A stretch of DNA of 64,000 bases, taken from assembly GCF_006345805.1 (NCBI RefSeq), contig NC_043023.1, positions 11,780,001-11,844,000 of the forward strand, read 5' to 3'. This document shows, piece after piece, positions 330 to 62,973 of the stretch. This DNA is from Octopus sinensis (taxonomy: Eukaryota). The position numbers were made by a program, and so were the translations under genes. Under the pieces are notes generated by a model, which was given only the letters and a program-made list of their open reading frames with translations, did not search any database and had not been told where the DNA came from. Numbering within the stretch: the stretch's first letter is position 1; each line of letters begins with the position of its first letter.

Positions 330-341
330 GCCATCTATTGG
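330..341 (-). promoter_or_regulatory. CTCF-like (or YY1-like) motif at the 5' end of ZNF gene A
   Basis: Reads CCAATAGATGGC on the minus strand, against the CTCF core CCASYAGRKGGC. The same motif lies at the same relative position in genes B, D, E and F. Confidence 0.5.
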
Positions 342-473
342 AGCATAGCAGAAATACAATCGTGTAAAGGGAAATAACCACACAACACCTCAACCTCGCT
401 TCTTTTAAATTCTTAATTAAGGTCCTTAATTACTGATTCACTGACTCGTTGCTTATTTGTGAATACGGTAAGT
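342..473 (+). other. Putative non-coding first exon and splice donor of gene A (GAATACG/GTAAGT, intron 468-2433)
   Basis: Strong donor consensus. A homologous exon and donor precede B, D, E and F. The acceptor TTTCAG/AATATC at 2433/2434 is conserved in all six genes. Confidence 0.7.
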
Positions 474-758
474 TGACAAAGATTTACTTTAAGGCTGTAA
501 AGGTGATACTACTACTACTACTAATAATAATGTAAATGATAGAATTCTGTGAACTTCTCGATGTTACAGTAATTATTTTTCGAAGCGGGAACCTGACAAT
601 AATTAGGAAAATATATTTGCTCGTCTTAATTAATAACTTCCAAACTGAAATGTTGATTACATACTTTTTTTGTTACCAAATTGTTTTTCGGGGACTGTGG
701 GATATAGTAGAATTTCGGGTAAGTTTTTATACTTTCACCTTTCAATAAGGAAAAACAA

Positions 759-978
759 CGGTTGTCAAGCAATGGTGGTGGGGAGGGACAAACAGACACA
801 CAAACACACACACATACATATATATATATATACGACAGGCTTCTTTCAGTTTCCTGAAGGCATTGGTCGGCCCGGGGCTATAGTAGAAGACACTTACCCA
901 AGGTGCCATGCAGTGGGACTGAACCCGGAAACATGTGGTTGGTAAACAAGATGCTTACCACACAGCCACTCCTGCGCC
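759..978 (-). mobile_element. tRNA-derived CORE-like SINE, partial (family S1)
   Basis: Head GGCGCAGGAGTGGCTGTGTGG with A/B-box-like motifs, CCTTGGG core segment and internal (TA)n. Many copies in the window. Confidence 0.85.
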
Positions 979-1249
979 TATTTATTTATATTTTCCTCAA
1001 TTTTCTTTGCTTTCAATTATGTTTTTTCTCTCTCGTTTAATGAATTATGGTAACCACCTAATGTGCCACGAAACACTTTTTTTGGGGTGGGGTCGAGAAC
1101 CCACGGAAATTTCACCCTCCAACCATTTTCATATATTTTTTACTGTTTGTTTCATTACAAATATTTTTAGATACCATTTTGCAGAAATACGTTTTCGAGA
1201 GAGTGTGGATTGCATTAGCAAGGAGCACTTCGTCAGTTGCGACGACGAG

Positions 1250-1600
1250 GATCAACGGAACAGCTTGCTCATGAAATTAACTTGCAAGTGGCTGAGTACT
1301 CCACAGACAAGCATACCTTAACGTGGTTCTAAGGGCCTACTCTGGCTCCCTATTGGTTACACCCATGAGAGTCCCAGCTGATATGATCAACGGAACAGCT
1401 TGCTTATGAAATTAACTTGCAAGTGGCTGAGTACTCCACAGACAAGCATACCTTAACGTGGTTCTAAGGGCCTACTCTGGCTCCCTATTGGTTACACCCA
1501 TGAGGGTCCCAGCTGATACGATCAACAGAACAGCTTGCTCATGAAATTAATGTCCAAGTGGCTGAGTACTCCACAGACACGTGTACCCCTAACGTAGTTC
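1250..1600. repeat. 135-bp tandem repeat (about 2.6 units)
   Basis: Units start with GATCAAC at 1250, 1385 and 1520 and are nearly identical. Confidence 0.9.
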
Positions 1601-2150
1601 TCAGGGAGATTCAGTGTGACAAGGCTGGCCCTTCGAAATACAGATACAAGAGAAACAAAAAGAAAGATTGAGAGAAAATTGTAGTGAAAGTGTACAGGAG
1701 GGTTCACCACCACCCCCTGCCGGAGCCTCATGCGGCTTTAGGGGTTTTCGCTCAATAAACACACACAATGCCAGGTCTGGGAATCGAAACCGTGATCCTA
1801 CAACCACGAGTCTGCTGCCCTAATTACTGGGCCATTGCATCTTCACAAGATGAGAACTCCATCAGTTACAATGATGAGGGTTCCAGCTTGTTCATGAAAT
1901 TAACGTGCAACTGGCTGAGTATTCCACAGACACGTGTACCCTTAACGTAGTTCTCAGGGTGATTCAGCGTGATACAGAGTGCGACAAGGCTGGCCCTTTG
2001 AAATATAGGTCCTACTCATTCTTGCCAGCTGAGTGGACTGGAGCAATGTGAAAAAAAGTGTCTTGCTCAAGGACACAATGCACTGCCGGGAATTGAACTC
2101 ACGGCCTTATGATCGTGAGCTAAATACTCTAACCACTAAGCCATGTGCCT
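1600..2150 (-). mobile_element. Two tRNA-headed SINE remnants in intron A
   Basis: tRNA-like heads on the minus strand near 1750-1830 and 2055-2148 (GGCTTAGTGGTTAGAG...GAGTTCAATTCCC, followed by GTGTCCTTGAGCAAGACAC). Confidence 0.7.
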
Positions 2151-59912: not shown

Positions 59913-60427
59913 TTAAACACTATTTCCTGAAAATTATTTACTCTGGGTTGGCAATGAATATACTGAAGAATACAGGGTGGGAGTCCACCAAGGATCAGTC
60001 CTCAGACCCTTGTCATTCATCATAGTCCACCAGAAAATGTGTTCGTTTCTGTTTATCAATTCATGCCTTGAGAGGATTTAAACACAGAAATATGTATATG
60101 TATATACTAGCAGTATAGCCTGGCCTTGCTTGGGTGTGTTTTTTAGTTGTGCTTAAAACAGCGGACTTTGATGTCGCATTAACAAAGTTTTGACACAGTT
60201 TCAACCTATGAACTAAAGTATCATGGCGATGCTCGACTTTGCTCTGAATGTGCTGCAAATGTGTAATGCCGACTTCACTAGTTGGTTAATATTCCTTGTG
60301 ACTAGTTAAATGGCTATTTCTAAAAAATGTTTTACCACAGATATCACAGTGATGAGGTTTTCCCTTAGTGTGAATACGTAAGTGATAAGTCAACTGACTA
60401 TTATACAAGAAGGATTTACCACAGATT

Positions 60428-61327
60428 TCACGATGGTATGGTTTTCCCCCCAGTATGAATACTTTTGTGACAAATCAAATTACTTCTTTGAGAGAATGAT
60501 TTACCACAAATATCACACTGATATGGCTTTTCTCCTGTATGTGTACGTTTGTGTTTAGTCAAGGTACTGCTGTCAGAGAATGATTTACCACAAATATCAC
60601 AATGATATGGCTTTTCTCCTGTATGAATACGTTTGTGCTGAGTAAAATTACTCCTTTGAGTGAATGATTTACCACAAATATCACACTGATATGGCTTTTC
60701 TCTTGTATGTGTACATTTGTGATTAGTCAAGGTACTACTGTAAGAGAATGATTTACGACAGATATCACAATGATATGGCTTTTCTCCTGTATGAATACGT
60801 TTGTGCTGAGTCAAATTACTCCTTTGAGAGACTGATTTACCACAAATATCACAATGATATGGCTTCTCGCCTTCATGTGTAAGTTTGTGTACAGTCAAGT
60901 CCCCACTTCGAGGGAATGATTTATCACAGATATCACAATGATATGGCTTCTCACCTGTATGAATACGTTTGTGTACAGTCACCTCCCCACTTCGAGAGAA
61001 TGATTTATCACAGATATCACAATGATATGGCTTTTCTCCTGTATGAATACGTTTGTGCTGAGTCAAACTACTCCTTTGAGAGAATGATTTACCACAAATA
61101 TCACAATGATATGGCTTCTCTCCTGTATGAATACGTTTGTGCTGAGTCAAACTACTCCTTTGAGAGAATGATTTACCACAAATATCACAATCATATGGCT
61201 TCTCCCCTGCATGTGTAAGTTTGTGTTTAGTCAAGTTACCACTTTGAGAGAATGGTTTACCACAAATATTACAGCGATATGGTTTCTCTACTGCATCAGG
61301 GTTTTTGCGTTTAGTTAAACGATTCAT
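60428..61327 (-). CDS. C2H2 zinc-finger protein F (299 aa, 10 fingers, ends after a homopolymer frameshift)
   Basis: Same leader as E. Ends HTGGKTIPS*. Acceptor 61529/61528, donor 62836/62835. Confidence 0.88.
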
Positions 61328-61675
61328 TATCAGAGAATAATTTATCGTACATGCAACAATTAAAGTGTCTTTTAAATTCCTATGAATATGTTTTATATAA
61401 AGAGGTTGATGTATTGATGAATGCTCCTTATAAATATATCATCTTCCTTTAGTCAATAAAAGTTGATAAAAACATCAGAGGCACATCTGAATGAAGTAAT
61501 TTCTTTGAGATCAACAAGTTGGGATATTCTGAAATAAGAAAAGAAGCAGTAAGATAAAGAGTATAAGATAAATGATATAGTAATTCAACATTGCAAATCT
61601 TACATCAACACTGTCATCCATTAATTATCCGAGTACGCACCCCACTTACACCCATAAAAAAAAAATAGTGTAATA

Positions 61676-62360
61676 GGTGTAAAATAATGTATGGTAAACA
61701 AATATGAAGAAAAAAATTTTCGCCGACGAACAGGGAATCGGTGAGAGGACTTGGAACATTCCCGATGTGAATTTTCCGAGTCCTCTCCCCCACCCCCCGT
61801 TCGCCAGCAGGCATATTTTTTCCATATTCGTTTATTACACGTTATTTTACACCCGTTACACTATTTTTTCCCTCGTTTCGGTGACCGGGTGTCGAAGTGG
61901 AGTTGATGGATCGCGTGAATTATCCGAGTCCGTACACCATCCACCTCCGTCAAAAAATTGAAAAAAAAAAATAGGGCGATCCCTCGGGATATGTCCAGTA
62001 AGTGGTTTTGTTTACATTTCTGGAGATAACAGAAACCCTTTTGTCCCACCTCTAACCCAAACCCTAACCCCCCATATATACATACATACATATATATATA
62101 TATATATATATATATGCAAAAAAACACTTTCTTGAAATGTATCCGGTATTTCCGGGCCGTATACCGAAGTTACGCCAAAAATGATGTAAAATAATGTGTA
62201 GTAAACGAATATACAGAAAAAAAATTTTCGTCGACGAACGGGGAATCGGTGAGAGGACTTGGAACATTCCCGATGTGAATTTTCCGAATCCTATCCCCGG
62301 ACCCTCGTTCACCAGCGCGCACTTTTTCCCCTTTCATATTCGTTTTTTTCTGCACCTATT
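61676..62360. repeat. Palindromic repeats (about 180 bp) in intron F
   Basis: Copy 61676-61853 contains a 37-bp in-register stem at 61727-61803. Confidence 0.85.
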
Positions 62361-62835
62361 GCATTACTTCCTTTTTTTTTTGTTTTACTCGCGTCAAAGA
62401 CTTTAGTTTGACAGAAATCTGTAGTTATACCATCATCATTCCTATAATTAAAATAACCTTAAAGAAAATCCGTCTCCACTTACCGTTTTATCAGTGTCTA
62501 ATTAACAACAGGACAATGTTAATTAATGTGGTGTCCTTCAATCGGTTTCCCCCTCATTTTACTAATTATCTGCGCCGCTTTACCCTCCTTTCATAAAATA
62601 ACTGGCTTTATATCACACGTAACCGTCGGTCTTAGGATTTCATAAACAACAGATCAACATTTCAGTTTGGAAATTATTAATTAAGATTTGGAAATTATTA
62701 ATTAAGACGAGCAAATTATATTTTCCTAATGTTATGGTTCTGCTTCGAAACACTGTCACACCGAGAGGTTCACATAATTCTATTATTTTACATTGTTATT
62801 AGTAATATTATTAAAGTCAATGTTTGCCGACTTAC

Positions 62836-62973
62836 CGTATTCAGATATTAACAACGACTAATTAACTGCTAATTAATCACCGTGATTAATATTTTCGATG
62901 CTTCGCGGTTCAAGTGTTGAAAAGGTTATTTCCCCTTACACGATTGTATTTCATCAATTCTCCAGTAGATGGC
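62836..62973 (-). promoter_or_regulatory. First exon and CTCF-like motif of gene F
   Basis: CCAGTAGATGGC at 62962-62973 (12/12 match to the core consensus). Donor at 62836/62835. Confidence 0.65.

Follow-up and report, generated by a model that had tools for sequence, protein, structure and literature searches.

In the 64-kb stretch of octopus DNA that was analysed in this study (the window), five C2H2-ZNF genes carry a CTCF-like 12-mer at the 5' edge of a homologous 5' module and, as judged by sequence comparison, the five copies are very probably one ancestral sequence that was inherited five times via gene duplication. We assign a probability of approximately 60% to a combined account in which the 12-mer belongs to this inherited module and is a start-site-proximal candidate element, with CTCF as the best match by sequence. 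An ancestral unit that carried the motif, a non-coding exon 1, the donor and approximately 390 nt of intron would have been duplicated in tandem or segmentally and, if it is functional, the 12-mer would most likely be a start-site-proximal factor-binding element of a common promoter. CTCF binding is a candidate function of the motif, and gene choice of the protocadherin type would be speculation. As matters stand, the 12-mer is best seen as part of a promoter module that was passed on by duplication, which makes it a lead and not a discovery.

A search with CCANTAGATGGC on both strands of the window returned exactly five matches, which were found at the five coordinates where the first-pass annotation had placed a CTCF-like motif and nowhere else (Table 1). 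The number expected by shuffling was 0.01, a statistic that overstates the significance because the five sites correspond to one another in the alignment of a single paralogous block; this membership in one block points to one ancestral occurrence that was copied and not to five independent ones. The particulars that had been claimed for these sites were reproduced as well. Compared with CCASYAGRKGGC, copies B and F agreed at 12/12 positions, while copies A, D and E agreed at 11/12 with an A base at position 4; in every one of the five cases, the motif ran antisense to its gene; and each of the five ZNF genes with an intact 5' end had one motif. The distance to the donor, counted between the final bases of motif and exon, was 126 nt in A, 119 in B, 120 in D, 118 in E and 126 in F, in line with the 118-126 nt that had been proposed. 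The donor sequence GAATACGGTAAGT was found at 461 on the plus strand and at 19960, 47749, 56611 and 62830 on the minus strand, with a copy that had one mismatch at 29325 (minus), and the GAATACG/GTAAGT donor was unchanged in all five motif-bearing genes.

Table 1. Motif copies, 5' modules and exons of the six ZNF genes (A to F) in window coordinates.
Feature	Gene	Position	Strand	Details
Motif copy	A	330-341	-	CCAATAGATGGC; reads GCCATCTATTGG in gene A sense (+ strand); CTCF matrix score 10.3
Motif copy	B	20085-20096	+	CCACTAGATGGC; antisense to gene (-); score 16.5, top match of the window
Motif copy	D	47875-47886	+	CCAATAGATGGC; antisense to gene (-); score 12.3
Motif copy	E	56735-56746	+	CCAATAGATGGC; antisense to gene (-); score 14.5
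Motif copy	F	62962-62973	+	CCAGTAGATGGC; antisense to gene (-); score 15.9
5' module	A	~318-657		within-window BLAST and alignments
5' module	B	19587-20107	-	within-window BLAST and alignments
5' module	D	47452-47906		within-window BLAST and alignments
5' module	E	56269-56766		within-window BLAST and alignments
5' module	F	62466-62984		within-window BLAST and alignments
Putative non-coding exon 1	A	330-467	+	no ATG; ends ACG/GTAAGT; 5' end provisional
Putative exon 1	B	19966-20096	-	donor and alignment
Exon-1 remnant	C	29298-29337	-	~27 nt of exon 1 3' end and donor GAACACG/GTAAGT; directly adjoined by a 3'-truncated LINE
Putative exon 1	D	47755-47886	-	donor and alignment
Putative exon 1	E	56617-56746	-	donor and alignment
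Putative exon 1	F	62836-62973	-	donor and alignment
Last exon	A	2434-3879	+	acceptor TATTTCAG/AATAT, 5'UTR, CDS 2857-3879, 340 aa, C2H2 array
Last exon	B	14780-17177	-	start 17177 after acceptor; CDS 15586-14780, 268 aa; repeat 15618-16194 within 5'UTR
Last exon	C	25446-27689	-	start 27689 after acceptor; ORF 27038-25446, 530 aa, 18 fingers
Last exon	D	36566-37656	-	start 37656 after acceptor; ORF 37585-36566
Last exon	E	53893-55236	-	start 55236 after acceptor; CDS 55035-53893, 380 aa
Last exon	F	60428-61528	-	start 61528 after acceptor; CDS 61327-60428, 299 aa

With the motif as reference, the homologous module spans about -12 to +510 and consists of the 12-mer at its 5' edge, the non-coding exon 1, the donor and approximately 390 nt of intron 1. 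Modules B and E are 72.8% identical over 526 nt; among D, E and F, the identity is approximately 88% and takes in about 900 nt of upstream DNA that is rich in SINEs. The equal spacing, the orientation and the count of one motif per gene arise because the module was inherited with each gene duplication. The earlier caveat that the whole first exon is homologous by descent holds, and the homology also takes in the adjacent intron. Further upstream, the ancestral sequence is interrupted separately in each lineage and always short of the motif: in D, the 3' end of a LINE adjoins the motif at about -20; in B, a palindromic repeat begins at -66; and in E and F, SINEs are located at about -60. In gene A, the motif forms the midpoint of an inverted duplication, a palindrome of approximately 90 nt (289-377). 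No transposon insertions were found inside the 5' module in any of the five copies, which, like the upstream breaks, speaks for constraint on the motif. Other candidate elements around the module were rejected. A CCAAT and TGACGTC pair, which is located about 250 nt further upstream in A and B and was considered as a promoter, belongs to a dispersed palindromic repeat of which the window contains at least six copies; an AAACG/GTAAGT segment about 430 nt downstream (B, E and F) was not significant as an internal exon-1 duplicate when compared with shuffles; and a hairpin, CAGYAGA-GCCA-TCTANTG, in either RNA or DNA could form only 4 to 7 of its 7 pairs and showed no covariation on inspection of the alignment. 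Moreover, no known RNA family reached its gathering score on either strand of the whole window, and hence none did so in the module.

The gene models are coherent, with unchanged donors, a common acceptor (TATTTCAG/AATAT in all six genes) and a single coding exon that begins MN.L.K in each of the six. Intron 1 of gene D is approximately 10.1 kb long and contains an LTR retrotransposon. Gene C is without the motif and without the first ~100 nt of exon 1, a loss that came about by a LINE-associated deletion. The ORF of gene C is intact despite the absent motif.

The 12-mer had two parsimony changes over its 12 columns compared with a block mean of 7.0, and its between-group identity was 0.94 compared with 0.70 for the remaining exon 1; these values come from five copies in only two deep lineages (A/B vs D/E/F), which makes the power of the comparison very low. 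Within the exon, the motif is set apart by its conservation, as none of the 109 other windows, the donor aside, was as conserved, but across the module 59 of 405 windows of 12 nt (15%) were at least as conserved among the same five copies. In the intron, this fraction was 18%, and the invariant run of the motif (8 nt) is exceeded in length by two intron runs, one of 13 nt (TCTTAATTAATAA) and one of 16 nt (AAACTGAAATGTTGAT). On these figures, we regard the chances that the 12-mer is under a constraint of its own as evenly poised. At somewhat less than even odds, the 12-mer could be without any specific function, a part of the duplicated module that mutation has so far spared and whose likeness to CTCF arose by chance. 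The equally conserved windows and the longer intron runs fit this explanation, as do the post hoc choice of the motif, its inferred ancestral state (CCAATAGATGGC, a weaker CTCF variant) and the persistence of gene C without it. However, the 12-mer is the sole conserved island of exon 1 besides the donor, the chance of a CTCF matrix match above 12 bits in a search space of ~1.1 kb is ~1-2%, and four independent rearrangements end before they reach the motif.

The account that we prefer, an inherited module with a candidate element near the start site, draws on the position of the 12-mer, which lies nearest the 5' end of all conserved elements of the module and follows an initiator-like YCAG(T/C)A at a distance of 6-9 nt. 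This position 3' of the initiator-like sequence probably places it at or just past the transcription start, and a promoter-proximal factor site is plausible. YY1 motifs are said, after work by Xi et al. in 2007, to be concentrated just downstream of human start sites. The octopus element resembles such a YY1/Pho downstream core-promoter motif in that its GCCAT core is present, invariant, in sense orientation and close to the presumed start, with the invariant 8-mer GCCATCTA reading in sense just past the initiator-like sequence. Unlike a YY1/Pho motif, it matches the extended consensus AAnATGGCG(G) poorly: by eye, the agreement with CAAGATGGCGGC was 7/12 positions (8/12 in E), and the A at consensus position 2 (the first A) and the G that follows the core are both absent. 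Its conserved bases also run past the YY1 footprint, as the invariant CCA/TGGAG portion is inside the CTCF footprint and outside that of YY1. A reading of the 12-mer not as a CTCF site but as a core-promoter motif just 3' of the start (GCCATCT in gene sense), either of the YY1/Pho type or initiator-proximal, seems unlikely to us. An NF-Y CCAAT box was rejected, as CCAAT is found only in A, D and E, with CCACT in B and CCAGT in F.

Among the candidate binders of the 12-mer, CTCF is the best match by sequence. On a hand-entered vertebrate CTCF matrix (maximum 29.7 bits), the five copies scored 10.3-16.5 bits and made up five of the nine best matches of the window, which agrees with the CTCF likeness that the first-pass annotation had described. 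A Markov model expects 1.6 matches per window with scores above 12; in octopod DNA from elsewhere, two such matches were found over 80.6 kb. Less in keeping with that description are the A at core position 4 in three of the five copies (-2.8 bits) and the T immediately 3' of the core in four of the five (-3.9 bits), both of which are disfavoured. Overall, the support for a genuine CTCF site is modest, and CTCF as the binder of the 12-mer seems to us possible but rather doubtful. CTCF has been reported in cephalopods (PMC9023564), and for coleoids, both CTCF and motifs that resemble its sites have been described at TAD boundaries and at loop anchors (PMC9023564, PMC13652810). These motifs come from the same clade and are the same type of motif match as the octopus ZNF sites, so that the organism would be expected to have both the factor and a plausible function for it. 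The reports describe genome-wide enrichments at a resolution of 100 kb or 500 bp, whereas the ZNF motif is a per-gene site, and a tie between CTCF-like motifs and ZNF promoters or per-gene sites was not found in the literature searched or in the available portions of these two papers.

Exact look-ups of the six ZNF proteins of the window gave no matches, and a homologue search with gene E returned generic ZNFs, among which the sole cephalopod match was Argonauta hians P0017. Its locus (L001) was rejected as a paralogue, as the N-terminus is unrelated and both an exon-1 homologue and the motif are absent. A 45-aa N-terminal query produced no candidates, and the invariant intron block had 0 matches in metagenomes. 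At an Octopus sinensis locus that was reached via a TE protein (L002), the ZNF module was absent. The octopod nature of the window is borne out by a TE protein with 75% identity to one from Octopus sinensis and by a SINE family that the window has in common with locus L002.

In octopus genomes, C2H2-ZNF genes have undergone a very large expansion that is specific to the lineage. A comparable case is offered by the ZNFs of zebrafish chromosome 4, which have a common TATA 'sharp-peak' promoter (PMC10547256). Both are large lineage-specific arrays with a promoter module inherited through duplication, but the octopus module is TATA-less and has a non-coding first exon and a CTCF-like element in place of the TATA element. 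If it is true that a CTCF-like element is fixed at each ZNF promoter, this would provide a concrete handle on ZNF regulation and on loop extrusion in spiralians, in which CTCF loop extrusion is still an open question (PMC10658181).

In the clustered protocadherins (Pcdh), the promoter CTCF site (conserved sequence element, CSE) is on the sense strand and points to reverse-oriented distal enhancer sites (PMC7811963). The first-pass annotation had suggested that a similar per-gene CTCF element may serve insulation or stochastic choice here. We consider it very unlikely that each ZNF promoter has one oriented CTCF-bound site that insulates the gene or that allows stochastic choice by looping to a distal element. 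Like the CSE, the octopus element is CTCF-like, is located at a near-constant distance in each gene of a tandem array and has the same orientation relative to the gene. Also consistent with it are the presence of a single site in every gene whose 5' end is intact, the same-strand tandem array of the B, D, E and F sites, the moderate to good matrix matches and, in cephalopods, an encoded CTCF with CTCF-like motifs at loop anchors and at the boundaries of domains. However, the array-like features all follow from duplication, and the uniform distance between site and promoter, 118-126 nt to the donor in all five genes, is accounted for by homology; additionally, the core base is disfavoured in three of the five copies. 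Unlike the CSE, the octopus motif is antisense and faces upstream of the gene in 5/5, whereas the Pcdh promoter sites face downstream to the enhancer. No unique opposite-oriented partner site or enhancer was found within the window, where the remaining matrix matches, those on the opposite strand included, are in SINE, LTR or LINE sequence. Every ZNF gene also differs from Pcdh in having its own acceptor and coding exon, and the conservation of the motif is not clearly higher than that of its flanks. By extension, the whole octopus C2H2-ZNF family, possibly hundreds of genes, might keep one oriented CTCF-bound start-site element, with arrays that form loop or stripe domains or allow one-of-many choice. 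We regard this analogy as highly improbable; if true, it would represent an independent invertebrate counterpart of the protocadherin mechanism in a ZNF family.

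The regular placement of the CTCF-like 12-mer in front of the ZNF genes is explained, with a probability of about 0.9 judging from the sequence comparisons, by descent. The alignment and the within-window BLAST revealed a homologous 5' module that extends from ~12 nt upstream to ~510 nt downstream of the motif and contains the first exon, its donor and ~390 nt of the first intron. The caveat of the first-pass annotation that the first exon is homologous by descent was therefore justified, and the homology reaches into the intron as well. The equal spacing, the equal orientation and the presence of one copy per gene result from this duplication. 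The modules form two subfamilies, A/B and D/E/F, and the remnant in gene C is A/B-like. D, E and F are ~88% identical across the whole unit, together with ~900 nt of SINE-rich upstream DNA, which in gene D was moved away by a LINE that inserted ~20 nt upstream of the motif; B and E share 72.8% identity over 526 nt. In gene B, the intron part of the module is tandemly duplicated (19923-19587 vs 19420-19092, 78% identical, within 19084-19923). A second consensus donor, AAACG/GTAAGT, lies ~430 nt past the first one in B, E and F (e.g., ~56185) and is not conserved in A and D; an alternative first exon could end there. Against shuffles, the flank of this donor showed no significant similarity to the end of exon 1.

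All of the factual statements in the first-pass annotation about motif positions, core matches, spacing and strand were correct. The search with CCANTAGATGGC returned exactly the five matches it had claimed in the 64-kb window, compared with 0.01 predicted by dinucleotide shuffles of the window, which is not the relevant null because the five sites are duplicates. The CTCF core CCASYAGRKGGC was matched at 12/12 positions in copies B and F and at 11/12 in A, D and E, whose fourth base, an A, is the mismatch. In 5/5 copies, the CCA...GGC strand runs antisense to the gene, and 126, 119, 120, 118 and 126 nt (A, B, D, E and F) separate the last motif base from the last exon base, within the claimed range of ~118-126 nt to the donor. 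The 13-mer GAATACGGTAAGT was found at five positions and, with one mismatch, at another.

No ATG was found between the motif and the donor and, hence, exon 1 was modelled as non-coding; in the predicted gene structure it is ~130 nt long, and an intron of 1.3-10 kb separates it from the last exon. Each of the six C2H2-ZNF genes has one coding exon. The acceptor TATTTCAG/AATAT, which opens the last exon, is conserved in 6/6 genes; it precedes the ATG by ~200-230 nt in D, E and F and lies farther upstream in A, B and C (424 nt in A, ~1.6 kb in B); the 5'UTR of gene B is interrupted by a repeat. All six proteins start with MN.L.K, the fingers following directly, and no Pfam domains other than C2H2 fingers were found in them. 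In A, C, E and F, degenerate ZNF-like sequence continues beyond the stop codon (2 kb away in F), and the present ORFs of these genes are, as read from the sequence, shortened versions of longer finger arrays. The long antisense ORFs opposite the ZNF arrays, which encode a periodic peptide, are most likely not genes but a side effect of the 84-nt repeat structure.

Positions of the ZNF genes, their 5' elements and neighbouring repeats in the window
Feature	Position	Strand	Remark
Gene A coding exon	2857-3879	+	
Gene B coding exon	14780-15586	-	
Gene C coding exon	25446-27038	-	
Gene D coding exon	36566-37585	-	
Gene E coding exon	53893-55035	-	
Gene F coding exon	60428-61327	-	
Motif A	330	-	
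Motif B	20085	+	
Motif D	47875	+	
Motif E	56735	+	
Motif F	62962	+	
13-mer	461	+	
13-mer	19960, 47749, 56611, 62830	-	
13-mer	29325	-	one mismatch
Upstream break, A	arms 289-314 and 352-377		inverted duplication, symmetry centre inside motif
Upstream break, B	-66 (20162-20919)		dispersed palindromic repeat
Upstream break, D	~-20 relative to motif		LINE 3' end
Upstream break, E and F	from ~-60		SINEs
LINE beside gene C	29338 to ~33500		3'-truncated
LINE at gene D	47907-51190		oriented as gene D
Original upstream DNA of D	51191-52129		88% identical to E, 56764-57669
LTR retrotransposon	42113-47451		intron 1 of D
Dispersed repeat, other copies	33566-33963, 52837-53228, 15618-16194, 9986-10166, 12554-12716, 55-250		
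SINE copies, e.g.	8234-8639, 9617-9984, 10963-11350, 17315-18291, 36168-36542, 38708-39772, 56806-57282, 63039-63380		
Degenerate ZNF-like, A	4000-5530	+	
Degenerate ZNF-like, C, E and F	24571-25113, 53227-53522, 57690-58266	-	
Antisense ORFs	15007-15573, 36961-37443, 54204-54842	+	

The restriction of the motif to genes with an intact 5' end also held: gene C, in which most of exon 1 is gone, has none. All that it retains is the donor and the final ~27 nt of exon 1, and the LINE directly adjoins this remnant, which indicates that its motif was deleted; gene C has nevertheless kept an intact 530-aa ZNF ORF. The motif and ~100 nt of exon 1 are gone from the region 29298-33500, and the LINE has APE and RT ORFs and lacks its own ~330-nt 3' end. 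The arrangement suggests a deletion that removed the tail of the LINE along with the start of the exon.

The first-pass annotation regarded the motif as a per-gene element, and among the five copies in the window it is more conserved than the adjacent exon 1. Fitch parsimony on the tree ((A,B),(D,(E,F))) gave two changes for the 12-mer, both at the N position, compared with a mean of 7.0 for the 12-nt windows of the module. Between the subfamilies, the identity was 0.94 in the motif, 0.70 in the remainder of exon 1 and 0.73-0.80 in the intron part. None of the 109 other windows in exon 1 was as conserved, the motif and the donor being its only two conserved islands, and at least equal conservation was found in 59/405 windows (15%) of the whole module and 45/249 (18%) of its intron part. 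The longest invariant runs were the donor (14 nt) and the intron blocks TCTTAATTAATAA (13 nt) and AAACTGAAATGTTGAT (16 nt); that of the motif, GCCATCTA (8 nt), is shorter than both blocks. Since the five copies represent only two deep lineages, constraint on the motif is hinted at rather than demonstrated, and the chances that the 12-mer is separately constrained appear to be even. The two intron blocks, plus GAAAATAT.ATTTGCTCG, are invariant in 5/5 genes (e.g., 56455-56505 in E and 19768-19805 in B), exceed the invariant run of the motif in length, are TAATTA-rich and resemble homeodomain sites; a 21-nt tandem duplication is present at them in D and F. The actual regulatory core of the module may lie in these blocks.

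The ancestral DNA upstream of the motif was truncated independently in each lineage. No transposon insertions were found within the module in any copy; beyond the module, each intron consists mostly of repeats. On the sense strand of the gene, an initiator-like YCAG(T/C)A precedes the motif by 6-9 nt. Transcription would start at or just before the motif, which would be the 5'-most conserved promoter element. Only in gene A, the sole ZNF gene on the + strand, does the motif centre a ~90-nt palindrome (289-377; arms 81%), and the 40-45 nt upstream of it repeat, in inverted orientation, the initial ~45 nt of exon 1. A fold-back or an inversion may have had its breakpoint here, at the short palindrome CAGTAGA-GCCA-TCTAYTG that is inherent to the sequence. 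In gene D, the LINE is a second copy of the gene-C family, and the junction there creates TATAAAT ~25 nt before the motif. The LTR retrotransposon is young (LTR segments 99% identical) and carries a 737-aa RT/RNase H ORF and integrase fragments; the best named match of the polyprotein was an Octopus sinensis protein (75% identity). The dispersed repeat matches its own reverse complement at 74% identity and contains a CCAAT box beside TGACGTC; directly upstream of modules A and B, it mimics a promoter. Much of the intergenic and intronic DNA consists of a single SINE family, which recurs at 80-92% identity in another Octopus sinensis locus, L002 (31680-32137, 45426-45869 and 57615-58021), and marks the window as octopod DNA.

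The likeness to CTCF was scored using a hand-entered version of the JASPAR MA0139.1 count matrix, which makes the scores a lead and not a reference result: B 16.5, F 15.9, E 14.5, D 12.3 and A 10.3 of a maximum of 29.7. The five sites are among the nine best hits in the window, for which a first-order Markov model predicts 1.6 hits >12; 80.6 kb of other octopod DNA (an Argonauta hians locus and L002) contained two such hits and no 12-mer matches. Two bases lower the scores: at core position 4, copies A, D and E have an A (-2.8 bits), and directly 3' of the core, all copies but E have a T (-3.9 bits). The inferred ancestral state, CCAATAGATGGC, is a weaker match; independent changes, to C in B and to G in F, both improved it, as is expected by chance 44% of the time. 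That CTCF binds the 12-mer seems doubtful. The third-best hit, 1708-1726 (-) (15.3 bits, GCTCCGGCAGGGGGTGGTG), lies in a tRNA-derived SINE-like element in intron 1 of A and may be a SINE-borne CTCF-like site. The motif might instead be a YY1/Pho site, as the sense strand contains the YY1/Pho-like core GCCATCT, but the extended consensus is matched at only 7-8/12 positions and the invariant CCA/TGGAG bases fall outside the YY1 footprint. An NF-Y box was rejected (CCAAT in only 3/5 copies), as was a hairpin, CAGYAGA-GCCA-TCTANTG, which showed no covariation; no Rfam families reached the gathering score anywhere in the window on either strand.

Read as a 'forward' CTCF site, the antisense motif would face upstream of its gene. 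All opposite-strand CTCF-matrix hits in the window lie in repeats, such as the SINE in gene A, and none outside them. In passages of PMC9023564 and PMC13652810, cephalopods are reported to encode CTCF, with CTCF-like motifs at TAD boundaries and loop anchors. Direct evidence of loop extrusion in spiralians is described as lacking in a passage of PMC10658181; neither these passages nor literature searches linked CTCF-like motifs to ZNF promoters. Descent of the whole module remains our preferred explanation, and it is highly improbable that the protocadherin-like insulation or choice that was initially suggested operates here. In protocadherin clusters, the promoter CTCF sites all face downstream, toward reverse-oriented enhancer sites (PMC7811963), whereas the motif of the octopus ZNF genes faces upstream.
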